Assembly (NCBI GenBank): GCA_033442325.1
Contig: JAWQFM010000018.1
Location: 698,617-762,616 of the forward strand
Length of the DNA: 64,000 bases
Direction: 5' to 3'
From: Salpingoeca rosetta
Lineage: Eukaryota; Protista; Choanoflagellata
Position 1 is the first letter of the stretch; each line of letters begins with the position of its first letter. A model generated the notes under the pieces. It had not been told where the DNA came from. It worked only from the letters and a program-made list of their open reading frames with translations, and made no database searches. Of the stretch, positions 5,042-64,000 are shown piece by piece. The position numbers were made by a program, and so were the translations under genes.

Positions 5042-16435
<11,394 letters not shown>

Positions 16436-19191: not shown

Positions 19192-19746
19192 GTTGACAGT
19201 GTGGAGGAGGTGAGGCACGAGGAACGTGGCAGAGACAGGTGTGTGTGTGCACAGGGGCAGAGAGAGAGAGAGTGTGTGTGTGTGTGTGACAGAGAGTGAG
19301 TGTGTGTGTGAGAGTGAGAGACAGAGAGTGAGTGAGAGAGCGAGTGAGAGTGAGTGAGAGTGAGTGTGAGAGAGTGAAGGTGAGTGAGAGAGTGAGCGAG
19401 AGAGTGAGTGACACACACACACACACACACACGCACAGACACACACACTCACTCACACACCAACAGCACTGACCTGCTGGCTCAACTCAAAAGTGTGCAG
19501 TTTGATGATGTTCAAAGTGGGTGTGGGGGTCAAGGGGATGAGCTCGAATGTGAGTGCGTTTAGCCAAACGGTGGTGGGCGGGAACCTTTTTCAACTGGTC
19601 CACACAAAAACCATTTCATTGTTGACGAAAGCCAGAGGCGAAAGAAGTGTTTCCGTTTTGTGGGTGTGTTTTTTTTTTTTGGGTGTTTGTGGGTTTATTG
19701 GGGAAAACTCGCTGAAATCTTACACTGCTCCCAGCGCTCAAAGATG

Positions 19747-19776
19747 CTGGGGGGCGACACTGACCCGCGAATTTTT
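19747..19776 (+). repeat. Left terminal inverted repeat (30 bp)
   Basis: Exact reverse complement of 29937-29966. Confidence 0.95.
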
Positions 19777-20002
19777 CAAATGACCCGACCGCGGGCCCTC
19801 AAATTGGTCGCGGTCACAGATCGTTCATAAAAGTCTGCATTCACCTTGTGCTGTCGGTAGCTTCGTCGGCTCTTGCGTGCACGACAACAACCGCAACCAC
19901 TTTCGACCACACACACGAGCACGAACCCAAACCAACAAGCGCGTCGTTTGGTGACGAACCAGCACTTTGACCCGTAACACCACAGCAACTTGACACGACA
20001 AC

Positions 20003-20806
20003 ATGGACCCTGTGATGCTTCGCAGCCGTAGTGCCGGACACAGTGCGCAGCAGTTGCTACCATTGTGCGACCAATTCGACGAGTTCATGACTCACGTCCA
20101 CCGCACACTCGGTGGTGCGTGTTCCAATATGACATTCACATTCTATGGACAGGCAACCAAGCTCGACCGATACTCATACGCATACCTGAAGCGGGTTCGT
20201 GCAGAAGCCCGTGTCGTCGAGTACGACGCACGACCTGACATCGTCATGACAGCAATTTCTCAGACCACGCCTGCAACAGCACCAGCCACCCTTCAGATTG
20301 ACCTGTCCGATGACGAAGACGAGTCCCACGAAGGCGAAGCGGCAAGCACAGACAGCACCTGTGCAGCACAGCCGATCTCGCGCTTGGATCAGCAACAGCC
20401 ATCAATCACCCAGTCGGAGTTGTTGTCGTCATTGGCGCCGTTTGTTCTCAAACGCGTTCGCTATGCGACAACTCTGCACGCGCCCAGACAGTCGACACCT
20501 CTTACAATCATGTCCCTCACCTCCAATCGGCTTCCCTCCGTGTGTCGGCTTGTGTTGTGCCAGCTACCATTGACTCGCACTTTGCAGCGCATTCAAACAG
20601 ACGTGAGGGCTGTTTTCATGGAAGACAGCGAGGTCCCTGCTGTAGCTGCCATGCCACTCAGGTATTTTGTTGTGAGTTGGAGGGTGGGACAGTCGATTGA
20701 TATTCTTTCGTGCGTGAGGGGACGCTGCGCCGTATGCGAGCTCGAGGGTGAGGTTCGGCTTCCCTATCATTGTGCGTGTTGCAAATCGAAGTTTGCTCAT
20801 TCTTAA
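20003..20806 (+). CDS. Transposon ORF1: 267-aa accessory protein with C-terminal Cys/His cluster
   Basis: Intronless ORF inside the TIRs ending CAVC..YHCACCKSKF. The stop lies 18 bp before the transposase ATG. Confidence 0.65.
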   Translation: MDPVMLRSRSAGHSAQQLLPLCDQFDEFMTHVHRTLGGACSNMTFTFYGQATKLDRYSYAYLKRVRAEARVVEYDARPDIVMTAISQTTPATAPATLQIDLSDDEDESHEGEAASTDSTCAAQPISRLDQQQPSITQSELLSSLAPFVLKRVRYATTLHAPRQSTPLTIMSLTSNRLPSVCRLVLCQLPLTRTLQRIQTDVRAVFMEDSEVPAVAAMPLRYFVVSWRVGQSIDILSCVRGRCAVCELEGEVRLPYHCACCKSKFAHS

Positions 20807-20824
20807 GCACTCACATCGTGAACA

Positions 20825-23235
20825 ATGTCGCTTGATATGGTTAGGTACTCCAGGAATCAGATTGATTGGCAGACAACCTTACAGCACCAACCGGCACAGG
20901 AAGACTTCCCCATGGACAGCGTCCGTATATCCATGGCTATGCGGGCATCCTTGGCGGCCGCTCTCGGTGCATGTGGTACAATTTTTTTCACGATGGCCGG
21001 ACCAGACACGGATGCGAACGTGGTTTCATTGGCTACCCTCGATACCGCAAGGGTGCGCGTGCACGATTCATTGCACCAGCATGCCATCTTTGTGTCGCAT
21101 GAGTCGTTTTTGGGCTTGTTTCGGCTTGCTCAGAAAGATCGCTACATGACATGCAAGGTGACCGTGTCAGACCAGCTTGTGCAGGGAGAGGGCTTTGGCC
21201 AGAGCCTGAGTGACGATGGTCGCATGGACTGTGATGACGACGATGATGCTGGATGCGACAGCGATGAAGACAGCACGGCACACATCGGTGCCATCTCTGC
21301 TGCCACCACGACGCCATCAACAACGACAACACCACCCGTGTGCCAGGACGCACCCGCCACCGCTGCCACCACTGCTGTCACCACGACGCCATCAATAACG
21401 ACAACACCACCCGTGTGCCAGGTCGCACCCGCCACTGCTGCCACCACTGCTGTCACCACGACGCCATCAATAACGACAACACCACCCGTGTGCCAGGTCG
21501 CACCCGCCACTGCTGCCACCACTGCTGTCACCACGACGCCATCAACAACGACAACATCATCACCAGCGCAGTCGGGCAGACGACTAACCGAGGCAGAGAT
21601 ACGTCACCGTCTCAACATTCACGGGCTGATCCTCAAGCGCACACGGTTGCACAAAGGCTACCCAGTCTACACGTGTGTTTGCAAAAAGTGCGGCGAGCTG
21701 CAGCAGCTCCATTCTGTTGCCCCGACAAAGCTTGGGCGGCATAGATCTCGTTGTCACAAGCGGACTGGAGGAATGCGGCAGCTAAACATATTCCAAGTGG
21801 CAAGGGCTGCAGAGACAGCTGTTCGCACCAAGCGCATCGCCCCGTCCCTGCATGTGCTGCGTCGATTTCTGCATGCTGAACTTGATTGTCTGCAAGTGAT
21901 CAACGAAGTAAACGAAGACAGCTCGTATATGCCAAGTCACCTTGCCATCCTGTATTCTACAATGGAAGATGGGATGCCCTCGGTTATGAGAGAATGGTTG
22001 TCTCTGGCTCTACATCGACATTTCGGGGCAACTCTGCCAACAGCCAGGGTTCCGCAAACGCCCGCACTGAACATGCTAGCAGCAAGTGTGTATGCAGGGA
22101 TCAAGCCTTACACAGCAATGCGCAATGCAGGCATTCCGCTGCCGTCCGAGCGAACGATGCAGAGGAATGCGCCCCTGCCTCGGTTTCAATCGGCCGTCGA
22201 TGATGAAGCTATTGCTAACGCATTGAGACTCCTCAGTATGGACGGCGCCACTGCGATTGACGGGTGCCTTTCGGTTGACGGCATGGCGTTGAGTTCTTGC
22301 GTGGAGTTTGTTCCCAGTTATGGCCAAGTCACTGGACTGTCCGACACGACCTCGGCAGAAGAGCTACGTGCGGCTGTGGAAGGCCAAAGCCTTGTGCAGT
22401 GGGTGCGCAGCGCGAAGCTCATACAGACAGCACACATTGCAGTCGTGACCACCCTCGACAGCACATTCTGTCTTCCAGTTGCCATCACGTACTCTCACCA
22501 GATGTCGGCGTGGGGTGACTTTCACCGCATGATAAGCTCGTTCTTGGACGGCATACATCGCTGCCTTCGGTGCATCGACGCCAAGTTGGAATGCAAGCTT
22601 GATCCAGTGTCTGCCACTTGCACTGCATGTGACACAGCAGGAACCCGTTGCATTTTCTTCAACATCGTGGCAATCTCCACTGATTCAGAAGCAGGGCAGC
22701 GCCGAGCCCTTCAAGAGGGCTTTCCGGGCATCACAAGCCTACTCGACGTTGGCCATGCCATCAAGTGTCTCCGGAATGCACTCGTCAACGCCTTCATCCG
22801 CCTCAGAGGGTTTCCAGTGAGCACTCGTATGCTAATCGGGCTGCTTCCACTTTCGACAGTGGTTCCCGCAGACAGAATGGCACACCTGCATGTGCGGCGC
22901 TTGCTTGATGCTGCCGAAGACCTGCCCTCAGGAAGCACCGTCGTCACACTGCACCCTGATCCGTTGTTAAACCAGAGCTGGTCATGCGGCATCATTGTGG
23001 CTCTGTGCTCGTGGGTGGATGCAGACTTCTTTGTTGATGACAATGGCCAGTTCTTTCGTGCACGGCGCATCTCGCGGCAGCCAGAACTCCTCTTCAAGTT
23101 TCAGCCTGGCCAGACCACCATCTCCAGAGCTGCTACTTATATATTTGTCATCGTTGATGGGCGAATCCATACTTTCGATGCCCGCTCTTCACGCTTCGTG
23201 CAAGTACACCTACATGCAGAAGAGGCCGGAGTTGT
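20825..23235 (+). CDS. P-element-like DDE transposase, 5' part (interrupted by LTR)
   Basis: Motifs LPSERTMQR, GCLSVDGM (first D), VAISTDSE (second D) and LLDVGHAIKCLRN (DxxHxxKxxRN). BED-like CVCKKC..LGRHRSRC upstream. Confidence 0.85.
21306..21557 (+). repeat. 75-bp coding tandem repeat (~3.3 copies) in the transposase N-terminal linker
   Basis: Unit starts at 21306, 21381, 21456 and 21531 and encodes TTTPSITTTPPVCQVAPATAATTAV. Confidence 0.9.
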
Positions 23236-23692
23236 TGTTGCAAGTTCATGGTGGTGGTGCTGTTGTTGGAGACTTGTGTGTGTGTGTGTGTGTGTGTGCT
23301 GTGTGTGCTGTGTGTGCAGAGTGTGCTGTGTGTTGTGTGGGAGATTGTCTTGGCAAGAGAGAGTTGTGTGTGTTTACTTGAGTTGTGAAGCAAACAAGGA
23401 TGTAGGATGAATGAACACTCCAACAGAAAGAAACAGAGCAGAAGACAAGAATTGTCGACAACGCAAAGTGGTGACGTGGCAGTGTTTGTTGAGAGTTGTG
23501 TGGTTATGTGGTGTGTTATGCAAGAGCATGCAACATCGAGCAACCACAGCACAAGCTAAACACTGCACGTGCAACAGGTTGGAGGGAAATCACGTGAACA
23601 TTCCAGAACACAAGAGAGGTGAGTGCAAATTTGTGGTGTCGTGAAGAAGGGAGGTCAATGATGACTCAGCAGACAGGACTTGCCTGTCAACA
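23236..23692 (-). repeat. 3' LTR (457 bp)
   Basis: TG..CA ends. Preceded on the minus strand by PPT AATGCGGGGGAG (23693-23704). Near-identical to 27517-27973. Confidence 0.93.
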
Positions 23693-23914
23693 CTCCCCCG
23701 CATTGACCTACCTCTCTGCTGCGTTGATGTTCTGAAACGTGATGAGCATGTGGATGATGTCATGCATGTAGGAATGGCATGGGCAGATGTAGGTGAGATG
23801 TGAGTAAGGACGTGTGTTGTGGAACACGTTTAAGAAAATGGTTGGTGCCTGTGGTGCGCAGCCTGTTGTGGAAGGCTGGCCCGAGTGAAGGCGTGTCCTG
23901 TGGTGCGCGGCCGC

Positions 23915-26705
23915 TCAGAGGTCCTGACGCGGAGTCGAAGGACGTGGCGACCGGCCCGAATGAGGACGGGCCCGTGGCTGGTAGCCTGGCAGAGGACGCT
24001 GGTCGAACAGCATCGTGCAGAACTGAGCCGTCTTGGGCCGAGGGAGGATCTTCGTGAGGAGATCTGCGATCATGTGCTCCGTGGCGAGGTAGCTCAGCAC
24101 AATCCTCTTGGTGTCGACGCACTCGCGGATGTAGTGGTACTTGACGAGGATGTGCCGCATGCGCGAGGCGGCGTGTTCGGCAACGCGCTGCGCCGGCTGG
24201 TTGTCCGTGTGGATGAGCGTGGGCTCGCACAGGACAGCGCCGGTGAGCTCCTCCTGGAGTTGGCGAAGGAACATGAGTTCCTGTGCGGTGGCTGCGAGAG
24301 CCATGTACTCCGCGTCGGCGGAGGCTGTGGCCACGGTGGCCTGCAGCTTGGAGTTCCAGGACACGGGGCCCGTGGAACAGAAGACGACGAAGCCCGTGCG
24401 GGAACGTCGCGTGTCAACGTCGGAGGCGAACGACGCATCCGAGTACGCTGAGAGCACGCCGTCGGCAGTGCTGCCGTTGCTGGTGTCGCCAGTGGCGGCG
24501 TACTTGATGGTGTAGGACAAGGTGCCCTTGATGTAGCGAAGAAGGTGCTTGGCAGCCTTCCAATGGTCCATGCCGAAGTGCTGCATACGGCGAGATAGGA
24601 TGGAGACAGCCGCCGAGATGTCTGGGCGCGTCATCGTCGCAGCATAGAGGAGGGAGCCAAGCAGCTCGCGGAACGGCACGTCCGGGAGTGGCTCCTCCTT
24701 GTCGGCTGGCTTGTCGACGTAGCCAGTGCAGAGCGGCGTGCCGACCGGCTTGCAGTCAGCCATGCCGAAGGTCTCCAGCACGCTGCGCAGGTAGTGCTCC
24801 TGGCTCATGGTGACGGTCCTGGCCTTGCGGTCGTGCTGCACCTTGATGCCGAGACATATGTCTGGGCTGCCCAGGTCCTTCATCTTGAAGCGCTTGGAGA
24901 TGGCCTTCTTGAACGCGGCCATGTCGCTGTCGCTGTCGGCGAAGATGAGCAGGTCGTCCACGTAGACGGCAACCCACATCACTTTGCCACCATTGCAGGT
25001 GCGGCGGTAGATGCAGGCGTCCGTGGCTGTAGCGACGAAGTCCTGCTCGCGCATCCAGGCGTCCAGCGTGTGGTTCCACAGGCGCGGGCTCTGCTTCAGC
25101 CCATACAGCCCGCGCTTGAGGCGCAGGACTGTACTCGGGGAGAAGATCCCGTCGACGGCCGGTGGCTGGACGTAGATCTCGTGATCCACGGGCGCGTTGA
25201 GGAACGCCGTGTTGACGTCCATCTGCTGGATGTCCATGCCACGCGCGACGGCCATGGCGAGCATGGTGCGGATGGCTGCGATGGTAGCCGTCGGGGCAAA
25301 GGTGTCTGTGTAGTTGACACCGTGGACCTGGGAGTAGCCCTTGGCAACCCAGCGCGCCTTGTACTTGATCACCTTGCCCTGGTCATCGCGCTTCCTCCGA
25401 AAGATGACCATGCTGCGGAGAAGCTTGTGGCCCTTGGGAAGGTCAGCGCGAGGCACGACGTCGTAGACGTCATTGGCCTGCATTGCCGCAAACTCGTCCA
25501 GGATGGCTTGGCGCCACTCCTCAGAGTCTGGCGAGGCAAGCGCCTCCTTGACGGTGCCTGGCTCAGCTGACGTGGCAAAACTGCCAGCAGCGATGTCTGG
25601 TAGATGACCACCCACTGCTGATGTCTTCTCCCCCGTACCAGCAGCGCTGGTGGCAACGTGACACGTGGTGGTTGAGCCACCAGAGGTGTCGTTGTCGCTG
25701 AGGGTCTCAGACACCAGCAGCTGGTCCCAGACGGAGCCGCCAAGGGCGCGTGGCTGGAGCTGCAGCTCCCCCGCACGTGGTGCAGTGGGAGCGCCGGTGG
25801 CACTGTCCTCGGTCGAACGCTGAGCGGTATTGTTGGCATGCGAAGCAGAGGCACCGCTGTTCTGCTCTTGCTGCTGCTGAGAGGAGGCGGCGTGCTTGTT
25901 CTTGATGGCGCCGAAGCGAGCGTGGATGGTGTGGACAACGCGTCGCGTGTCCGGCATCCAGACGACGTGGGCCTGGTCCTCCTCGGCGAAGCCGACGTAG
26001 ACGCCAACGCGTGAGCGTGGGTCAAGCTTGTGCCGCGTGCTGCTCTTCTCCACATGCACGTAGGCCGGCGAGCCGAAGACGCGCAACAGGCTGACGTCGA
26101 AGGCGTGCCCAGTCAGGGCCTCGAACGGTGACTTGTCCTTGAGGCTCCTGCGCGGCGCGATGTTGTGCAGCAGCGTGGCGTGCTGCACGGCGAAGCCCCA
26201 GAACGGCTTGTCCAGGTCCGCAGCAAACAGCATCGTACGCGCCGTCTCAAAGAGGGTGCGGAAAGTGCGCTCTGCGGATCCGTTCTTGGCCTGCGAGTGC
26301 GGTGGCGAGAAGCGCTGCTTGATGTCGAAGGCCAGGCACAGGTCGGTGAAGTCCTGGCTCTTGAAGACGGCGTCGCTGTCCGTCTGTAGCGTGGCGCCTC
26401 GGAGCGCGTTGACGACGTGGCGGTCCTTGCGCAGTTGCTCCAGGGCCGCACCGACGTCGTTCTTGTGCCGGATGAGGAACGTCCAGGCGAAGCGCGTGCA
26501 GTCGTCGATGAAGGTCAGCGCGTAGCGTGCACCTCGCAGCGACGTCTCCTCCAGCGGACCGGCGATGTCGGCGTAGAGCAGCTGGCATGGCCCAGCGCTG
26601 CGTGGAGCAGACTGCTTCGGGATGGAGGCGCGCGTGCTCTTGCCAAGCGCACATGGCCCACACGTGACGATTTGCTTGGAAGAGGCCTGGGCGATCTGCT
26701 GCCGG
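23915..26705 (-). CDS. Copia pol: integrase - reverse transcriptase - RNase H, 5'-truncated
   Basis: IN: CGPC, YADIAGP, TFIDDCTRF, LQTDSD, NGSAER, KLDPRS. RT: KARWVAKGYSQ, QMDVNTAFLN, LYGLKQSPRLW, YVDDLLI. RNase H: YSDASFA, AEYMA, TDNQPA, ADLLTK. Confidence 0.95.
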
Positions 26706-27973
26706 AGACAGCACACATTGCAGTCGTGACCACCCTCGACAGCACATTCTGTCTTCCAGTTGCCATCACGTACTCTCACCAGATGTCGGCGTGGGGTGAC
26801 TTTCACCGCATGATAAGCTCGTTCTTGGACGGCATACATCGCTGCCTTCGGTGCATCGACGCCAAGTTGGAATGCAAGCTTGATCCAGTGTCTGCCACTT
26901 GCACTGCATGTGACACAGCAGGAACCCGTTGCATTTTCTTCAACATCGTGGCAATCTCCACTGATTCAGAAGCAGGGCAGCGCCGAGCCCTTCAAGAGGG
27001 CTTTCCGGGCATCGCAAGCCTACTCGACGTTGGCCATGCCATCAAGTGTCTCCGGAATGCACTCGTCAACGCCTTCATCCGCCTCAGAGGGTTTCCAGTG
27101 AGCACTCGTATGCTAATCGGGCTGCTTCCACTTTCGACAGTGGTTCCCGCAGACAGAATGGCACACCTGCATGTGCGGCGCTTGCTTGATGCTGCCGAAG
27201 ACCTGCCCTCAGGAAGCACCGTCGTCACACTGCACCCTGATCCGTTGTTAAACCAGAGCTGGTCATGCGGCATCATTGTGGCTCTGTGCTCGTGGGTGGA
27301 TGCAGACTTCTTTGTTGATGACAATGGCCAGTTCTTTCGTGCACGGCGCATCTCGCGGCAGCCAGAACTCCTCTTCAAGTTTCAGCCTGGCCAGACCACC
27401 ATCTCCAGAGCTGCTACTTATATATTTGTCATCGTTGATGGGCGAATCCATACTTTCGATGCCCGCTCTTCACGCTTCGTGCAAGTACACCTACATGCAG
27501 AAGAGGCCGGAGTTGTTGTTGCAAGTTCATGGTGGTGGTGCTGTTGTTGGAGACTTGTGTGTGTGTGTGTGTGTGTGTGCTGTGTGTGCTGTGTGTGCAG
27601 AGTGTGCTGTGTGTTGTGTGGGAGATTGTCTTGGCAAGAGAGAGTTGTGTGTGTTTACTTGAGTTGTGAAGCAAACAAGGATGTAGGATGAATGAACACT
27701 CCAACAGAAAGAAACAGAGCAGAAGACAAGAATTGTCGACAACGCAAAGTGGTGACGTGGCAGTGTTTGTTGAGAGTTGTGTGGTTATGTGGAGTGTTAT
27801 GCAAGAGCATGCAACATCGAGCAACCACAGCACAAGCTAAACACTGCACGTGCAACAGGTTGGAGGGAAATCACGTGAACATTCCAGAACACAAGAGAGG
27901 TGAGTGCAAATTTGTGGTGTCGTGAAGAAGGGAGATCAATGATGACTCAGCAGACAGGACTTGCCTGTCAACA
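26706..27973 (+). repeat. 1268-bp direct duplication of 22425-23692 (811 bp of transposase plus LTR)
   Basis: Constant offset of 4281 bp. Only three differences seen: 22733A/27014G, 23512T/27793A, 23654G/27935A. Confidence 0.93.
27517..27973 (-). repeat. Second LTR (457 bp), flanked by GTTGT on both sides like a solo LTR
   Basis: GTTGT at 27512-27516 and 27974-27978. No TGG-type PBS next to it. Confidence 0.92.
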
Positions 27974-27976
27974 GTT

Positions 27977-29644
27977 GTGCCCCATCGACTGGTGTTTTCA
28001 TCCGCAGATTTCCACGACTGCTGTCTTGTGTCACGATGTGGCGCTATACTGACGGGGTCATTCAAACCAGACAAGCGACAGCTCATGTTCAGAGCAAAGA
28101 TGAGGCTCGAGGGCATTGGCACGTGTCACGATGCTGCGATCATTGGTGGGCAACAGGTGGTGGCTGCCACTGCAACTGGCGTCTTCAAGTGCAATGGTAA
28201 CAATGCTCCAGTTGCTGTCAAAGGGCTGTCCGGAATCAAAGTACTTCGCGTTGTGACCAATGAGGCGGGACGGTTGGCGATCTGCACTGCGCGGCTCGTC
28301 CTGCTTGAGGACACAAGTGATGGCCATTCAATTTGGCAACCACAGGACCTTGAGACGGAGGACCATGTGACGGACATGGCCGCTGACGGCAATGCACTCA
28401 TATTTTCTCATGGTCGCAGGGTGTCGTTGGTCACACGTTTCGATCCCTTGAAGGAATACCTGGTGAAGATTCGCCGCGTGTTCGATGCCGGAGGCTATGG
28501 TGGCTACGTTGGTGATCTAGCTGATTTTCGAACCGCTTCCATGGAATTGAAGAGCTATCTCAATGAGATGCGACAGCAGCAAGTCAATGCCATTAGCTTC
28601 CTGCCCCCAGGGTCTCTCCACGGCCCGCAAGGATGCATTAGCGCAACGACCCTAAAAACAATTGCTATATTGTGCACCGGATTAGATCAATTGCATGACC
28701 GCGGCATCACCAGCACGGCACGTGCCCTTCAAGAGGATCCGTGTGAGAGTTTCTTCTCTCTGCTGGTATCCGGCACAACGACAGCACCCACACACAAGGA
28801 GCTTGCCTTCAGGTTCCCCGTTGTTGTCAAGAACGCACTCGTGCGAGCAGCACAAGGGTCTCCAGTGTTTGATTTTGACAAGACTCGGACAGAGAGATCC
28901 TACAGTGGCCTGGAGTTTGTTGGACGTGCCCAGCCAACCTTCAGGCCATTGTTTCAAACGCGGCACAATCGAGATCGTACCCATGTGGATGATTGCGATG
29001 ACCTGCGACAATTCATGTCATCGTTTCTCGCCAACCTGAGCTGTCGACGGTCATCGCGCGTGAGGGCAACTGGCAAAGCACTTCTTGGGCAGAAGCCGCG
29101 CATCGCGTTCCTGACACTGCGCCAAGATGAGCTGCCATCAGACCGACCACTTCAGCCGACGTGCAAGCGACCGAAGACGGGCAGTAAAGGACACACACAA
29201 AGGGTCGCTTCCATCACGTTCCCCAAAAACGCCTTTGTGGGTGTCCTCCGGCAAGCGTCGACTCAAGGAGGTGCACAAGAGCTGTGGATTGCGAAGATGG
29301 TAGAAGACGTGTACGGCGAGCCGAAGGATTGTGCAATTCAGTGGCTAGAACAGAGCAACGAGAAGAATGGTACACATACGCTGCAGAAGGAAGTGGTGCG
29401 ATGCCCTTTCGGCTCATGCATCGCAGACATCTCGCGATTCGTCGACGTCAAGCGACACGGGGTGATTAACATCGACGACACTGTTTATGCTGTGCTGAAG
29501 GAGGAAGTTGGGCAGTTGGAGCAAGAACGCGACAACGACAAGCTTGCCCGTGCCAGAGATGGTGACGACGACGATGACAATCCCTATGCAAAACCTTACT
29601 CAACAGGATCAGAGGAACGGCGTCGACGACATCGACGACGGTAA
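27977..29644 (+). CDS. P-element-like transposase, 3' part
   Basis: Joins in frame to the 5' part (..HAEEAGV|VPHRLVF..) when 23236-27978 is removed. Contains LQEDPCESFFSLL, resembling P-transposase xQDxLExFF (catalytic E). Confidence 0.85.
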   Translation: MPHRLVFSSADFHDCCLVSRCGAILTGSFKPDKRQLMFRAKMRLEGIGTCHDAAIIGGQQVVAATATGVFKCNGNNAPVAVKGLSGIKVLRVVTNEAGRLAICTARLVLLEDTSDGHSIWQPQDLETEDHVTDMAADGNALIFSHGRRVSLVTRFDPLKEYLVKIRRVFDAGGYGGYVGDLADFRTASMELKSYLNEMRQQQVNAISFLPPGSLHGPQGCISATTLKTIAILCTGLDQLHDRGITSTARALQEDPCESFFSLLVSGTTTAPTHKELAFRFPVVVKNALVRAAQGSPVFDFDKTRTERSYSGLEFVGRAQPTFRPLFQTRHNRDRTHVDDCDDLRQFMSSFLANLSCRRSSRVRATGKALLGQKPRIAFLTLRQDELPSDRPLQPTCKRPKTGSKGHTQRVASITFPKNAFVGVLRQASTQGGAQELWIAKMVEDVYGEPKDCAIQWLEQSNEKNGTHTLQKEVVRCPFGSCIADISRFVDVKRHGVINIDDTVYAVLKEEVGQLEQERDNDKLARARDGDDDDDNPYAKPYSTGSEERRRRHRRR

Positions 29645-29936
29645 CTTCATTCAAGCAAGGTATGGATTGTACTCTAGTACTCTGTTTAGTTAAGTGGTTA
29701 GTCGGTTCTTTCAATTCTGTGCTGAGTTGTAGCTGTTGGGCGAACGCATTCGTTGTTCTGCTACATGTGACTTGAGGACTTGGACTGGTTCTCTTCTGAG
29801 CGCGTGTTGGGACGTCTGTATTACACGGTGGAGTTACCGAAACCAAGGGAAACGACGCAAAGCACATCACAAACGCCAGCTCGCGGGCCCAGATGACCCG
29901 ACCCGCGAGGCCAAAATTGGTCATGGTCAAGGTGGA

Positions 29937-29966
29937 AAAAATTCGCGGGTCAGTGTCGCCCCCCAG
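29937..29966 (-). repeat. Right terminal inverted repeat (30 bp)
   Basis: AAAAATTCGCGGGTCAGTGTCGCCCCCCAG followed by TSD AAGATG. Confidence 0.95.
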
Positions 29967-30433
29967 AAGATGGGGTAGGCAATTGCAGCAAACAAAGTTT
30001 TTTTTTTGTGTTAGATGCTTATTTGGACGTGTGGGTGTGGCACTTTGTGGGCGACTTTCCAGTTGTGGCAACTGACACCCACGCCCCCGCAACTCACTCA
30101 GTAACTTAGCACTCACATCAACAGACCAACACACGCAAAGCACGACACACACACACACACACACACACTCACTTGTTCATTTTCCCATCGACGCGACAGG
30201 AGCTCAACAGAAGGAGAAGAGGGAGAAGGAGAAGAGGGAGGAGTAGGAGGTGCTTGTGTGCTTGTTGTCACAGGATCTCTCTCCTTCTCAAACTCACACT
30301 CAACTGTCCCCCCACCCCCTTGTCTTGGTCCCTTTCTCTCTTTTCTCTTGCAGGTCCAGCGATCATTCCTCCTTACATGTGCTCTAGTGCTCTTGTTTAC
30401 TGAGTTTCTAGTGTTTACTTGTCTGCTCTCTCT

Positions 30434-59281: not shown

Positions 59282-60594
59282 GTGGTGGTGGTGTGTGTCG
59301 ACGTCGTCGTCGTCGTTGTTGTCGTCGATGTTGTTGTTGAAGTCGTGGCGGTAGCAGCACGATTGATGCCTGTATCTCTGCACACGTCTGCAGGTCCCAT
59401 TTGGGGTTGTCCACAACGCCTCCATCATGAACGCGATTGGCTGCTGTGGTCTCCAGCTCTACAACTTTGGAAAGACGGTGCGTATTGTGGTGTGTGTGTA
59501 TGTGTGTATGTGTGTATGTGTGTGGAGTGTGTGTGTGTATGTGTGTATGTGTGTGAGTGTGTGTATGTGTGAGTGAGTGAGAGATTGTGTGAAGAGTCTT
59601 GTGCTTGAGCACCTCCGCTGCTCACATGCAATCACGCTGCCACGCGTGGTGCAGGTGAGCATTGTGTTCTTCACGGAGAACTGGCGGCCGGATTCCTTCT
59701 ACGACAAGATCAAGGCCAACAAGGACCTCGGCATGCACACCCTCTGCCTCCTCGGTGCGTTGTGCGTGGAAGCTGGTGTTGGTGTTGTGGCTGTTGTTGG
59801 TGATGTTGATGGCTGCTGCTGCGGCGGTGGTGGTGTTGGTGTTGTGGGCGTTTGCAGTCGACGTGCTGGTAGTCGTTGTAGTTGTCGTGTGTGTGTGTAT
59901 TGTACACGATGAAGGAGAGCCTGTTGCTTCCATGTGGTCACGCGACCAACCGCCGGCACACGCGTGCCATCACGCCCTCAGACATCAAGGTGAAGGAGCA
60001 GAGCATTGAGAACTTGATGAAGGGGCGCAAGGTGTATGAGCCTCCTCGCTACATGTCCGTCAACCAGGTGCGCACGGATATGCTCGCATGTATGTGTGTG
60101 TCTGTGTGTGTGTCTGTGTTTCTGCGTGCTGCTGTGTGTGTCTGTGTTTCTGCGTGCTGCTGTGTGTGTGTGTGTGTGTTTCTGTGTGTTTCTGCGTGCT
60201 GCTGTGTGTGTGTATGTGTGCGTGTGTTTTGTGTGTGTTTTGTGTGTGTATCTCTGTGTGCATATATTTGTTTGTGTTCATGTGCTTCTGTCGTTGTGTT
60301 TTCCTTGTTTTCGCTCCCTGTCTCTGTTTGCGTGAGTAGCTGCGCGCGCGCGTGCGCGCGCGTGTGTGTGTGTGCGTGACATGCACAGCGGCGAGAATGG
60401 CGTTGTCGAACGCCGGCAGCTGCCGCACAGTTGTCATCAAAGATACTGTTCGGCAACCCCTCACGTGTCTTTCTTCCACCAATGTGTACCCTGTGCAGTG
60501 CGCAGAGCAGCTGATGGAGGTCGAGGAGAAGCGCCAGCTCGGTGGGTAATGTAACTCGACACACACAACATGTTGTGCCACTCCCCCCCCCCAT

Positions 60595-60632
<38 letters not shown>

Positions 60633-60826
60633 TGCCATCTGACACAATATCATGTCACATGTGTGTGTGTGTGTGTGTGTGTGGTCTTGCACCCATGCTT
60701 TCGAACCACCCCTTGCTCACTTCCTTCCTTGCACCTGCAGGCGTGTGCGGGCCAGATGCGCTTGCTGTTGGCGTGGCGCGTGTTGGATGCGAGGACCAGG
60801 TCGTTGTCTGCGGCACTCTCGTGGAG
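58178..60826 (+). CDS. DPH5: Diphthine methyl ester synthase; 3' end lost in N gap (60841-61463)
   Basis: [89 protein letters not shown]. Confidence 0.95.
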
Positions 60827-61472
60827 GTGCGCGGGCGAGANNNNNNNNNNNNNNNNNNNNNNNNNNNNNNNNNNNNNNNNNNNNNNNNNNNNNNNNNNNN
60901 NNNNNNNNNNNNNNNNNNNNNNNNNNNNNNNNNNNNNNNNNNNNNNNNNNNNNNNNNNNNNNNNNNNNNNNNNNNNNNNNNNNNNNNNNNNNNNNNNNNN
61001 NNNNNNNNNNNNNNNNNNNNNNNNNNNNNNNNNNNNNNNNNNNNNNNNNNNNNNNNNNNNNNNNNNNNNNNNNNNNNNNNNNNNNNNNNNNNNNNNNNNN
61101 NNNNNNNNNNNNNNNNNNNNNNNNNNNNNNNNNNNNNNNNNNNNNNNNNNNNNNNNNNNNNNNNNNNNNNNNNNNNNNNNNNNNNNNNNNNNNNNNNNNN
61201 NNNNNNNNNNNNNNNNNNNNNNNNNNNNNNNNNNNNNNNNNNNNNNNNNNNNNNNNNNNNNNNNNNNNNNNNNNNNNNNNNNNNNNNNNNNNNNNNNNNN
61301 NNNNNNNNNNNNNNNNNNNNNNNNNNNNNNNNNNNNNNNNNNNNNNNNNNNNNNNNNNNNNNNNNNNNNNNNNNNNNNNNNNNNNNNNNNNNNNNNNNNN
61401 NNNNNNNNNNNNNNNNNNNNNNNNNNNNNNNNNNNNNNNNNNNNNNNNNNNNNNNNNNNNNNNGACGACGAC

Positions 61473-61558
<86 letters not shown>

Positions 61559-64000
61559 TCCGGACCTGCTCGTCAACCGTTCACAACATCACAAAACATA
61601 GCCACACAAAGTCATGTTGAGCGCGTTTGGTCGGTGCCAGCGGTTGCTTTGTGTGAAGTTTTACACAAATATTCCGTTTGCCCCATGCATGTCTAATTCG
61701 GTGCATCGTTTGGGTTCATTGTTGTTCGTTTTTCGTTCGTTTTTCGTTCGTTTTTCGTTCGTGTTTGCGTTCAGGGGTTGCCCCGTTGACCCCTTCGACG
61801 TAGTTGGACACCAGCCAGCCAGCCTACCGCGGTTTGACGTACCAAACCTTCGGATTGCTTCTGCTTGTCGTTCTGCTTTCCTTTGTTGCTTGCGCACAAC
61901 CATAATTTTCTCCCTTTGTTTTTTCTTGCTTGCGTTGCACTTCACCTGTCATTCGCCACCGGGTACGGTTGTTTTGTGCCCCGGTTTGTGACCACATGCG
62001 CGTGCATACGGTCCATGTTCAAAGCACCTTCGCCACCGCCGAAGGCACAACAGGGTCGAATGCTTGCGTGTACGTCGGTGGTAATTTCTCATGCGATCAG
62101 CCACCCCACAACTTCAAGCGTCAGTCACGCCGCAAGCAAGCAAGCAAGCAAAAGCAAGTTGTGTGATTTGAGAAAAGCAACACTTTGTTGTTGTGAGACC
62201 CAACCTCATACACACACATGCATGTGAGCTTTCATTTTTCTTGCTGATGCATTTATCTCATCCACCCATCCACACCACACAGGTGGGTCAGGGTTTGGGT
62301 GCTGTTTTGTTGCTCTCCTTTTCCTTTCCTTTCTGTTCTGCTCTTTCTTGCTTGCTTTCTTGCCGATGCTTGCTTGCTTGCTTGCTGATGGTGGGTTTTG
62401 TTGTGTGCCTGTCCTTCAGGTTTGTGTGTCACACACATCATCGCATGTCACAACAAGCCAATACAATAGCCAAGCCATCGTTCCAGCGGTGCGTTTTGTC
62501 GCACAAACACCTGCTCGCACCACTGCCCGCACCACTTGGTGAAAGCCAAACGAGTTCCATTTCACGCTTGCCAAGTCATGGTGCCGTTTTGTTTTCTGGT
62601 TTCTTTTGCCTCTTGACCCAAGCTCCTCTTGCTCACATCACCCCCATCATCCATCCCAGCGTCCATCCTCACACCCGATCCATTTCGTTTTCTTGATCCA
62701 GCCGATCCAGCTCCAAAACAGCAACCCAAGGACACCCGCCCATCCCCGACAGATCGCAGACACGCATACGTCGTTTCTTTCCCACCCACAACACGCAGGT
62801 GAGCGAGCCTTTGTTGGCTGTTTTCGTTTGTTAACGTTCGCTGTTTGTTTGTTTACCCCCCTTGTTCCTTCCCCCGTGCGTGCGTGCGTGCGTGCGTGCG
62901 TGTGCGTGCGTGCGTGCGTGTGTGCGTGTTTCGATACGTGGCGCGCATCGTGCATTGCTCCCGACCCAAGTGGCATCGGGGTCGCTCGCAATACCCTCCC
63001 CACTCTTCCTCTGTGTGTTTGTGTGCCTCCCCACCTTTCTCTCTCGCTCTCCCACACACACACACACAACCAAGACCACACCAGCACTTGCTTCTGCTGT
63101 TCTGTGCTTTTTCTGTGCTTCGGTACGTCCCTTGGTTGTGTGCTGTTGTGTGCTGTGGTGGGCATTGCTTCTGTCCACCTCTTCAGCACGATCCCTGCAC
63201 ACACACGTTCCTTTCTTGCTGTGACGCGGTTCCCACACGAGCACACCACAACCAACCGCCAGCCAGCATGTGTGTGTGTGTGTGTGCTTCACTTTCTGCG
63301 ACCCCTGATTCCAACCTCCCTTCCCAACCAGCCAACCAATCAACCCACTTCTGCTCTGCGCACTCCTTGCTGAGTTGCCGTGCAATCGGTTGTGCACTCC
63401 TCCTCCCATCCCAACCCACCCACCACCGCTTCCTTTCTTTGTCTTCTTCCTTCGCATGCACTTCTGTTTCGTGTGGTGAGAGTTTGCTTGGTGTGTGGCC
63501 TGTCCTGGCCTTGTGACTTGCGTTGGTCGCGCGCATTGGTTGCGGCCGCCCCTGTGCATGGCCTGCATGGCACACGCGCTTTTCATGTGACACACGCGCT
63601 TTTCATGTGACACACGCGCACGCACACACGCACAACTAGTTGTTGTTGTTGCACGCCACGCTTCTTGCCGCCACACACCACTTGTTTGTGTTGCTCGTGC
63701 CACACGTATCATCGGGCTGCATTCTGTTTTGTTCCCTTGTTTTCAAAACCATCGCATCCACGACGCAATTCGCTCTCACCACACCCATCCCGAGCAATCA
63801 TCTGCGCACCAACTCACCGACCCCCCCCCCTCCTCTCTCTCTCAAATACTCCTTTCCTCTCTCTCCTTTTCTCCCCGTGTCATCTTGGCTCATGCATGCA
63901 TGACGTTCGGCCGTCGTGTGTCACCGTTGCATTTTTTTCCCTTTTCGCCCTCCATCCAACCCCTCATCTGCAAGATAACTTGGCAGGCATCTGGCGACCC

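Follow-up and report, generated by a model that had tools for sequence, protein, structure and literature searches.

A stretch of 64,000 nucleotides from the choanoflagellate Salpingoeca rosetta (the window) contains a transposase frame in which the second catalytic aspartate (D2) and the catalytic glutamate (E) are separated by an unusually long, beta-rich segment. The original prediction was that a beta-propeller had been inserted into, or had replaced, the GTP-binding domain that lies at this position in the P element transposase of Drosophila. This raises the questions of what kind of element the frame belongs to, what fold occupies the interval and what it might do beside an active site. 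In our reading the locus is a transposon distantly related to the P element, in which a propeller is nested within the catalytic core and would serve as a platform at the active site, and of which the present copy is dead; taken whole, this account is moderately probable.

A DNA transposon interrupted by a Copia element

Positions 19747–29966 of the window are a cut-and-paste DNA transposon of S. rosetta. The left terminal inverted repeat (TIR; CTGGGGGGCGACACTGACCCGCGAATTTTT, 30 bp, forward strand, 19747–19776) is a perfect inverted match to the right TIR on the reverse strand (29937–29966), and both ends are flanked by an identical 6-bp target site duplication (TSD), AAGATG, at 19741–19746 and 29967–29972. 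The genome holds two exact copies of this TIR, both within the window, and a single orphan with two mismatches. The transposase frame lies on the forward strand in two halves, separated by a gap of 4.7 kb. Its upstream half (20825–23235) is an open frame of 804 codons, the last being split by the gap, and part of the NCBI gene model PTSG_06860 is a 100% match to it.

The intervening sequence (23236–27978) is not an intron; it comprises a Copia LTR retrotransposon followed by a single repeat of the 5-bp target duplication that it caused, GTTGT, which is found identically at 23231–23235 and 27974–27978. The retrotransposon is on the reverse strand, such that its 3' LTR is at 23236–23692 and its 5' LTR at 27517–27973; these are 457 bp long, begin and end with TG...CA (in full, TGTTG...AACA) and differ by two mismatches. 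At 99.6% identity between LTRs, the insertion is young. At least 45 copies of the LTR occur in the genome at 96–99% identity, several of them paired ~4.8–5.2 kb apart; homology to these other copies begins at 23236 and stops at 23692, and at the locus L010 it runs on into Copia internal sequence. For the second LTR, unique-sequence contigs from three sequencing runs began 24–28 bases inside the LTR end and continued into the downstream half of the transposase. The internal fragment (23693–26705, reverse strand) encodes integrase, reverse transcriptase and RNase H without gag or protease, and Pfam analysis of the ORF at 23915–26839 identified rve, SH3_retrovirus and RVT_2 (6e-61), in that order. 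The presence of rve and RVT_2, with integrase preceding reverse transcriptase, together with TG...CA termini and a 5-bp TSD, places the element in Ty1/Copia.

Besides being incomplete, the Copia internal region carries host sequence: 26706–27516 (forward strand) duplicates the transposase at 22425–23235 with a single mismatch in 811 bp. The junction at 26705/26706 was bridged by none among the read contigs listed for four runs, while contigs passed 22425 unbroken, and the duplicate is either real or an assembly error. When the Copia element is removed the two transposase halves join in frame, leaving a transposon of about 5.5 kb. The original prediction had left 23236–27978 unnamed; nevertheless, the join it proposed coincides with the empty site and keeps the frame. 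The Copia element landed within blade 3 of the propeller described below, and the window's copy of the transposon is dead.

A second S. rosetta element (contig C15, locus L007) has an uninterrupted ORF of 772 aa across the corresponding region, in which D68 and E507 lie 439 aa apart, and the window frame is therefore not a chance ORF. The ends of this paralogue have TIRs of 17–19 bp beginning CTGG, 21-nt subterminal inverted repeats and a 6-bp TSD, AATGAC. An exhaustive profile search gave a family of 41 proteins. Members occur in S. rosetta and in marine metagenomes. All 17 full-length relatives from elsewhere possess the D-D-E triad with a D2–E interval of 418–592 aa; in P0019, a 627-aa fragment, the interval aligns at 267 aa. 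Family transposons are compact, at ~5.5 kb, and their frames are mostly intron-free.

Catalytic core and probable affinity with P element transposases

The first catalytic aspartate (D1; SVDGMAL, 22277–22279) is kept in all family members covering the site and D2 (AISTDSE, 22682–22684) is invariant; in 6p5a, a structure of P transposase, their aligned counterparts are D230 and D303. Past D2, DVGHAIKCLRN (22745–22777) represents a family-conserved DxxHxxKxxRN signature that aligns with SDTPHLIKLVRNH of 6p5a. The E (QEDPCESFF, 28745–28747), with an aspartate three residues ahead, is likewise kept in all members covering the site and sits on a helix (residues 678–687), past the insertion, in the AlphaFold model of the relative P0005. 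Counting across the join 23235|27979 gave 440 codons from D2 to E (184 before the join and 256 after it), in agreement with the original estimate of about 440 aa.

Upstream of the core, a zinc finger of the form C-x2-C...H-x4-C was read from the sequence at 21674–21763; this is BED-like rather than THAP, is shared by the C15 paralogue and occurs upstream of P0005 also, while no Pfam match to a THAP domain was found in the window transposase. A further cysteine cluster resembling Zn2Cys6 (CX2CX6CX8CX2CX6C, 22562–22651) lies just ahead of the strand bearing D2. All six of its cysteines are at least 90% conserved across the family; it showed weak profile matches to the Gal4-type clusters of LEU3, PUT3 and Pho7, and one member matched Pfam Zn_clus (0.0039). 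Beyond the E, the C-terminal region (28748–29644) is an open frame that aligns with P0005 up to residue 961 and includes helices, a small beta-rich domain (strands at 832–913 in the P0005 model) and, ahead of the stop codon, a basic tail; it produced no family match.

Comparison with known transposases points to a distant relationship between this RNase H-type D-D-E core and those of the P element and THAP9, on sequence evidence that is weak but consistent. When the N-terminal family profile was compared with solved structures, 6p5a was the top match (E = 0.16), aligned at D1, D2 and the DxxH motif, while no hAT, RAG1 or Transib structure was matched. The C-terminal profile found no solved structure, and the region around the E did not align to 6p5a. 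PF21787 (TNP-like_RNaseH_N) was the only transposase family matched, in 5 of 43 members at E up to 0.1; the best score belonged to P0021 (22.2 bits, E = 1.9e-4) and the window scored 13.8 bits (E = 0.074), so that no member reached the gathering score of 24.6. The ten nearest named Atlas clusters were all THAP9/TNP-like.

The P transposase has its triad at D230, D303 and E531, and its GTP-binding domain, placed between beta5 and alpha4, is almost entirely alpha-helical (PMC7776569); the original prediction had correctly given D303, E531 and a helical GTP-binding domain between them. Like P and THAP9 (6p5a/6pe2), the S. rosetta protein has a D-D-E RNase H core with a large domain between beta5 and the E helix, a counterpart of the DxPHLxKxxRN signature and an aspartate three residues before the E (D528 in P); its transposon resembles theirs in having TIRs of ~30 bp and, in the paralogue, subterminal repeats. 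However, the D2–E interval is 440 aa rather than 228, and the insertion domain ~400 aa with a nested propeller, rather than ~190 aa, nearly all helical and GTP-binding. There is a C2HC finger instead of a THAP finger, and the Zn2Cys6-like cluster is additional. P and zebrafish THAP9 elements have a TSD of 8 bp (PMC7776569), but each of the two S. rosetta elements has one of 6 bp. The GTP-binding domain, PF21788, was detected in none of 43 members, nor in the helical segments searched on their own with E allowed up to 10, and PF21789 and PF12596 had no match in the family. Among the GTP-contacting residues K385, K400, V401, S409, F443, D444, N447 and D528, only the position of D528 could be mapped, and this aspartate is retained by the S. 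rosetta clade (QEDxxE) but has been lost from the distant clade.

A TSD of 6 bp and the lack of a THAP domain speak in favour of a lineage separate from P. The family might then be a superfamily of its own within the (C/D)xxH group (hAT, P, MuDR, Kolobok and Dada), its likeness to P reflecting an ancient core. The extra cysteine cluster within the core, the lack of the P-associated Pfam domains and the failure of every P-family match to reach curated cut-offs are all in keeping with this, yet we consider it somewhat unlikely, given that P transposase was the top structural match at both aspartates and DxxH, that hAT, RAG1 and Transib structures went unmatched and that five members matched PF21787 and no other transposase family. 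Within the same group, Dada elements are comparable in the length of their TSD (6–7 bp), their DDE core and their DxxH motif, but they lack TIRs, have a D2–E interval of 176 aa and CCCC and CCHC fingers, and insert into U6, U1 or tRNA genes (PMC3706591). Membership of Dada was rejected because the window element has 30-bp TIRs, an interval of 440 aa and flanks without small RNA genes (no tRNA and no credible Rfam match). A distant affinity with P/THAP9 is therefore the reading preferred here.

A predicted propeller within the insertion domain

The insertion domain is placed between strand beta5 and the helix bearing the E. As modelled in P0005, it spans ~400 aa and contains a complete six-bladed propeller of NHL type, ~240–260 aa in length, besides a helical part of ~150 aa. 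The model has 24 strands, with pLDDT mostly 75–97, in a closed propeller of four strands per blade, and lists of structural matches to it were filled entirely by propellers. In the window, blades 1 and 2 and the start of blade 3 are encoded at 22931–23235, which aligns with P0005 residues 337–424 and beyond, while the remainder of blade 3 and blades 4–6 are encoded at 27979–28438, where the sequence from QVVAATATG onward aligns with residues 486–577 (33% identity); both regions of P0005 are strands in the model. The upstream half as a whole is 32% identical to P0005 residues 35–424. The propeller attributed to the window is thus predicted through homology, at 32–33% identity, to a modelled relative. 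All of the peptides quoted in the original prediction are present and fall on strands of blades 1, 2, 4, 5 and 6 in that relative; the segment it described as beta-rich consists of short strands throughout, and the structure predicted for P0005 is neither helical nor disordered, nor does it resemble the normal GTP-binding domain of P.

The NHL repeat itself (PF01436) was recognised in P0022, a distant relative, with 38.5 bits against a gathering score of 20. When E up to 0.1 was allowed, 8 of the 43 members matched it; the window, the paralogue and P0005 did not reach the gathering score, and the window sequence alone gave no NHL match. The propeller is also the least conserved part of the protein, with 21% identity against 33–48% in its flanks. 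The low identity and the lack of an NHL match in the window would suit an artefact of modelling, in which a degenerate or different fold acquires its blades in AlphaFold from distant rows that bear NHL repeats, as would the input alignment for P0005, which had only 43 rows and was rough in its middle region. We regard this as very improbable. Besides the number of strands and their pLDDT, the window aligns with P0005 on the two sides at E = 4e-53 and 5e-70, extending into blades 1–2 and 4–6. The segment is of the right length for six blades in each case (~255 aa in the window, 240 in the paralogue and 241 in P0005), and even a single-sequence fold of the paralogue, with a pLDDT of 32, placed strands in this region. 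A genuine propeller is consequently the interpretation adopted.

The propeller appears to be nested in the insertion domain and not to substitute for it. Some 150 aa of helices are kept on its two sides (P0005 residues 300–330 and 579–675), the latter corresponding to 28439–28744 in the window, which gave no Pfam match to the GTP-binding domain. The D2–E interval approximates that of P plus one propeller, which favours the first of the two options originally offered, insertion into the domain, over replacement. The arrangement is a hallmark of the whole family in marine eukaryote sequence, where the D-D-E triad, the six-cysteine cluster and DxxHxxKxxRN are conserved, and not the oddity of one copy.

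Putative role of the propeller and comparison with known systems

In P, Hermes and RAG1, the domains inserted at the equivalent position lie over the junction between transposon end and target DNA, and in P transposase the bound GTP positions DNA (PMC7776569). Given these contacts, the propeller would most readily be explained as an accessory platform next to the active site, for DNA or for a partner; we hold this tentatively, with rather less than even confidence. It would be held beside the active site to position or clamp DNA, or a partner, while cleavage and joining take place, and so might do for this enzyme what RAG2 does for RAG1, or possibly the DNA-positioning job of GTP in P transposase. 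Against a DNA platform, the low conservation of the propeller and its net charge, which ranges from -11 to +11 across members, are unlike a conserved DNA-binding face.

Propellers, those of NHL type included, commonly act as platforms for binding proteins. The propeller could instead be a module for targeting or protein interaction. It would then bind a further transposase subunit or a host protein of chromatin or replication, and choose insertion sites or assemble the complex, making no contact with DNA at the active site. Its faster evolution relative to the remaining enzyme, and the lack of consistent positive charge, are more in keeping with a partner that changes than with an unchanging DNA contact. 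This seems the less likely explanation, because the propeller is nested at the one point of the RNase H fold at which insertion domains are known to touch the DNA junction (PMC7776569), and because the 6-bp targets of the two elements found, AAGATG and AATGAC, are unrelated. The platform at the active site is accordingly retained as the preferred, if provisional, role.

Searches of full-text literature turned up no account of an NHL-type propeller built into a P-like transposase core. The insertion domains of DDE transposases such as P, Hermes, RAG1 and Tn5 govern the holding, hairpinning or joining of DNA ends, and to our knowledge those of well-studied eukaryotic enzymes are all helical; a complete propeller at this position would be a new way of building a transposase. 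We know of no characterised DDE transposase with a D2–E interval as long as 418–592 aa. A P-like core without a recognisable GTP-binding domain also bears on why P transposase requires GTP. The 6-bp TSD, C2HC finger, Zn2Cys6-like cluster in the RNase H core and NHL propeller in the insertion domain could be the marks of an undescribed, superfamily-level lineage of cut-and-paste transposons, in which the built-in propeller performs the job of RAG2 in cis or replaces DNA positioning by GTP; this remains a speculative and rather doubtful proposal. Choanoflagellates are among the closest living relatives of animals, and the compact transposons and mostly intron-free frames leave the family open to biochemistry.

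Among known systems, Hermes (hAT) has a large domain at the equivalent site of the RNase H fold and a (C/D)xxH motif after D2 (PMC7776569), as here, but its insertion is all helical and its TSD is 8 bp, and the family profiles matched no hAT structure. The NHL propellers of TRIM-NHL proteins (TRIM71/Lin41, Brat and Mei-P26) and of the PknD sensor bind RNA or ligands and are placed C-terminally or outside the cell, whereas the present domain is nested in the catalytic domain of an enzyme and is 7–13% identical to them in sequence. The natural comparison is with the pairing of RAG1 and RAG2 (and Transib/ProtoRAG), where a D-D-E RNase H enzyme also works with a six-bladed propeller beside its catalytic domain. 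Neither RAG1 nor RAG2 showed any relationship to the family in sequence. RAG2 is a separate protein of Kelch type, bound non-covalently to RAG1, while the propeller described here is of NHL type and belongs to the same chain as the enzyme, within its insertion domain; if the proposed role is true, this would be an independent case of a DDE recombinase depending on a six-bladed propeller.

The interrupted element and its genomic copies

The window (C18:698617-762616 of the 55.4-Mb S. rosetta assembly) carried an element at 19747-29966 that was bounded at both ends by perfect 30-bp terminal inverted repeats (TIRs) and by a 6-bp target site duplication (TSD), AAGATG. The + strand encoded its transposase in two long frames (20825-23235 and 27979-29644) with 4.7 kb between them; the first was 100% identical to part of the NCBI model PTSG_06860. 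Across the genome, the only exact copies of the 30-bp TIR were the two belonging to this element. In addition, there was one orphan with two mismatches (G000:C25:200493-200522), for which no partner was found and which is possibly the remnant of another insertion. G-C content was 0.36 at 60001-62000, against 0.52-0.63 in the rest of the window.

The interval between the transposase halves is a young Copia LTR retrotransposon. A pair of 457-bp LTRs (23236-23692 and 27517-27973), beginning TG, ending CA and differing at two positions, was flanked on both sides by GTTGT as a target duplication. At least 45 copies of this LTR were present in the genome at 96–99% identity, several of them as pairs approximately 4.8–5.2 kb apart. 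Homology to other copies started exactly at 23236 and ended at 23692, and continued into matching internal sequence at another locus (L010). An internal ORF on the minus strand contained an integrase, an SH3-like domain and RVT_2 (Pfam, 6e-61). When Copia and one GTTGT were excised, 23235 was joined to 27979 in frame, with GTG as the split codon. The original prediction was therefore right to join the two halves, although the join represents an empty site rather than a splice. An intron at 23236-27978, using the donor of the NCBI model (23203|GT) and acceptors near 27974 or 28007, was also considered; its phases did not match, and it was dropped because the LTR boundaries and the GTTGT duplication account for the gap exactly and in frame.

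The Copia element was itself abnormal, being without gag and protease and having instead, at 26706-27516, an 811-bp duplicate of transposase positions 22425-23235. The junction at 26705/26706 was bridged by no contig among those listed from four sequencing runs, while read contigs passed 22425 unbroken and the junction of the LTR with downstream sequence near 27973 was seen in three of the four runs. Either a misassembly or a strain-specific rearrangement may account for this duplicate.

A second, distant member of the family was located on contig C15 (locus L007, 2865-8414), with TIRs CTGGCCTCGGACATCC and the 6-bp TSD AATGAC. These TIRs were 17–19 bp long and started with CTGG, and were accompanied by 21-nt subterminal inverted repeats and by subterminal repeats of the GTCCGCTC type. 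Amino acid identity between this paralogue and the window element was 28–35%; across the equivalent region the paralogue had a single uninterrupted ORF of 772 aa, with D68 and E507. Its frame had one shift near 5900-5940, between the parts bearing the first and second catalytic aspartates (D1 and D2). Searches of the whole S. rosetta genome with PF21787 and PF21789, which are P/THAP9-type Pfam families, gave no useful match.

Public gene models were unreliable for both elements: PTSG_06860 (20003-23450) ends within the Copia LTR, and PTSG_05793, at the paralogous locus, is a patchwork that bypasses the catalytic residues. NCBI models also splice an upstream ORF of approximately 270–320 aa onto the transposase frame. 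This ORF was found at 20003-20806 in the window, at 3357-4274 in L007 and at 461-1426 in a Tara Oceans contig (L016). The C15 and Tara Oceans versions resembled each other by eye, without a match to any family, and the window's version had at least an N-terminal motif in common with the paralogue's. The ORF may encode either a second protein of the element or an N-terminal domain.

Relatives and conserved residues

Pfam searches of the window ORFs were empty at E 0.01 and gave a single faint match, to PF21787, at E 10; single-sequence PDB searches with each half of the frame produced only noise. When the window ORF, the paralogue ORF and the 43-row family alignment (A4) served as queries in word-index protein searches, only truncated or chimeric S. 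rosetta models, the family member P0005 and one unrelated NHL protein were found. An exhaustive profile search was then made, with a profile (A3) built from the paralogue ORF and two separate, trimmed window fragments, each half being handled individually. It identified 41 proteins, of which 9 had E < 1e-30; their sources were two public runs and metagenome assemblies, including those of Tara Oceans. The closest was P0005, a 970-aa protein encoded by one ORF on a 3.6-kb contig, with 32% identity to the upstream half of the window frame (residues 35–424) and 33% to the downstream half (residues 486–961).

The catalytic triad was placed at 22277 (D1, SVDGMAL), 22682 (D2, AISTDSE) and 28745 (E, QEDPCESFF). 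These three residues, and a DxxHxxKxxRN motif following D2, were kept in all A4 members that covered the sites. The separation of D2 and E, put at about 440 aa in the original prediction, was counted as 440 codons, and the interval ranged from 418 to 592 aa across all full-length members. Just before D2, at 22562-22651, was a CX2CX6CX8CX2CX6C cluster that was conserved in nearly all family members; within the RNase H core it followed helix alpha1 and preceded the strand on which D2 lies. Its spacing is that of fungal Gal4-type Zn2Cys6 domains; profile matches to LEU3, PUT3 and Pho7 were weak, and one family member matched Pfam Zn_clus (0.0039).

Elsewhere in the protein, the N-terminal part of the frame contained three tandem 75-bp units (21289-21559), which encoded a repeat rich in threonine, proline and alanine (TTTPPVCQVAPATAATTAVTTTPSI). 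In the model, the C-terminal region (29180-29641; P0005 832–913) formed a small domain rich in beta strands, with a helix and then an arginine-rich tail after it; it had no match in Pfam, or in PDB when searched with a C-terminal profile.

A predicted propeller between D2 and E

A single-sequence model of the paralogue ORF reached a pLDDT of 32; P0005 modelled with A4 reached 79.7 (pTM 0.75). In the latter model, a long strand ended at D117, helix 195–209 preceded the cysteine cluster (213–240), and strand 241–251 ended at D252. A short strand (270–273) led into the DxxH helix (275–288), followed by a hairpin and helices (300–330). Residues 337–577 then formed 24 strands, arranged as six blades of four, after which came helices at 579–675 and a helix (678–687) bearing E681. 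The beta-propeller that had been proposed from the sequence was thus borne out by the model, and the peptides quoted in its favour corresponded to strands of blades 1, 2, 4, 5 and 6. The window's propeller was assigned through alignment to the P0005 model, with the two halves aligned individually, and this alignment would place the Copia insertion point in blade 3.

NHL domains ranked top in an all-against-all structural search of 48,161 PDB representatives, with TRIM71 (21.8, 2.6, 220), Lin41 (21.5, 2.7, 225), PknD (21.3, 2.7, 226) and Brat (21.0, 3.5, 236). The Atlas and viral fold libraries returned generic propellers only, and all 981 chains aligned in a further PDB structure search, aimed at the Drosophila P transposase structure (6p5a), were propellers. 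Independent support for the NHL fold came from sequence: Pfam NHL matched 8 of 43 members (best P0022, 9.6e-10, 38.5 bits), the repeat sat between D2 and E in the members checked (P0021, P0022 and P0029), and the best PDB matches of the A4 profile were NHLRC2 (0.004) and SOQ1 (0.018). An Atlas feature search with the paralogue's propeller region gave no usable match.

In Drosophila P transposase the catalytic residues are D230, D303 and E531, and the GTP-binding domain, between beta5 and alpha4, is almost entirely helical (PMC7776569), in agreement with the values on which the prediction had relied. It had been suggested that the propeller was inserted into, or replaced, this domain. The P0005 model favours insertion and not replacement: minus the propeller, its D2-E interval retained approximately 150 aa, predicted to be mostly helices, against approximately 180 aa from the DxxH motif to E531 in P, such that the interval has approximately the length of the P insertion domain with one propeller added. 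None of the members matched PF21788 (GTP-binding) or PF21789, even where the helical segments were scanned alone at E 10. Of the residues listed as contacting GTP in P transposase, only D528 could be placed, as the aspartate at position -3 relative to the catalytic E; the S. rosetta clade retained it (QEDxxE) and a distant clade had lost it (TTLxxEN).

The catalytic domain of RAG1 needs a six-bladed propeller next to it, which a separate protein, RAG2, supplies. A role for the propeller at the DNA junction can be argued from its position, since the insertion domains that P, Hermes and RAG1 have at this site touch both the transposon end and the target (PMC7776569). The propeller might, tentatively, act as an accessory next to the active site. 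The propeller was, however, the least conserved region, with 21% identity within the clade against 33–48% in the flanks, and its net charge ranged from -11 to +11 across members, which argues against a fixed DNA-binding face. That it is instead a targeting or partner-binding module, as the original prediction had suggested, is considered somewhat less likely than the accessory role.

Comparison with P elements and Dada

The top PDB match of an N-terminal family profile (A5) was 6p5a (E 0.16), and in the alignment D230 fell on D1 and D303 on D2, with SDTPHLIKLVRNH opposite the DxxH motif. PF21787 was the only transposase family matched, by five members (the best at 22.2 bits, where the cut-off is 24.6). 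All ten of the nearest named clusters in Atlas were THAP9/TNP-like (score 0.82), which is taken as a lead only. The evidence for kinship with P elements is statistically weak, with these signs all in one direction. Full-text literature on P elements in choanoflagellates, and on transposases whose insertion domain is an NHL domain or a propeller, yielded no description of such a protein; the nested propeller of this P-like DDE transposase is rated as unprecedented.

The 6-bp TSD prompted consideration of Dada, which has TSDs of 6–7 bp. Membership was rejected because Dada elements lack TIRs, have 176 aa between D2 and E and insert into small RNA genes (PMC3706591); no small RNA genes were found at the flanks of the element.

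There is a real chance that the family deserves superfamily rank. Several features speak against its being a full member of the P group. Neither a GTP-binding domain nor a P-type C-terminal domain was detected in it. Both S. rosetta elements had a TSD of 6 bp, compared with 8 bp in P, and the family had a C2HC finger in place of the THAP domain, together with an extra cysteine cluster weakly resembling the Gal4-type Zn2Cys6 domain.
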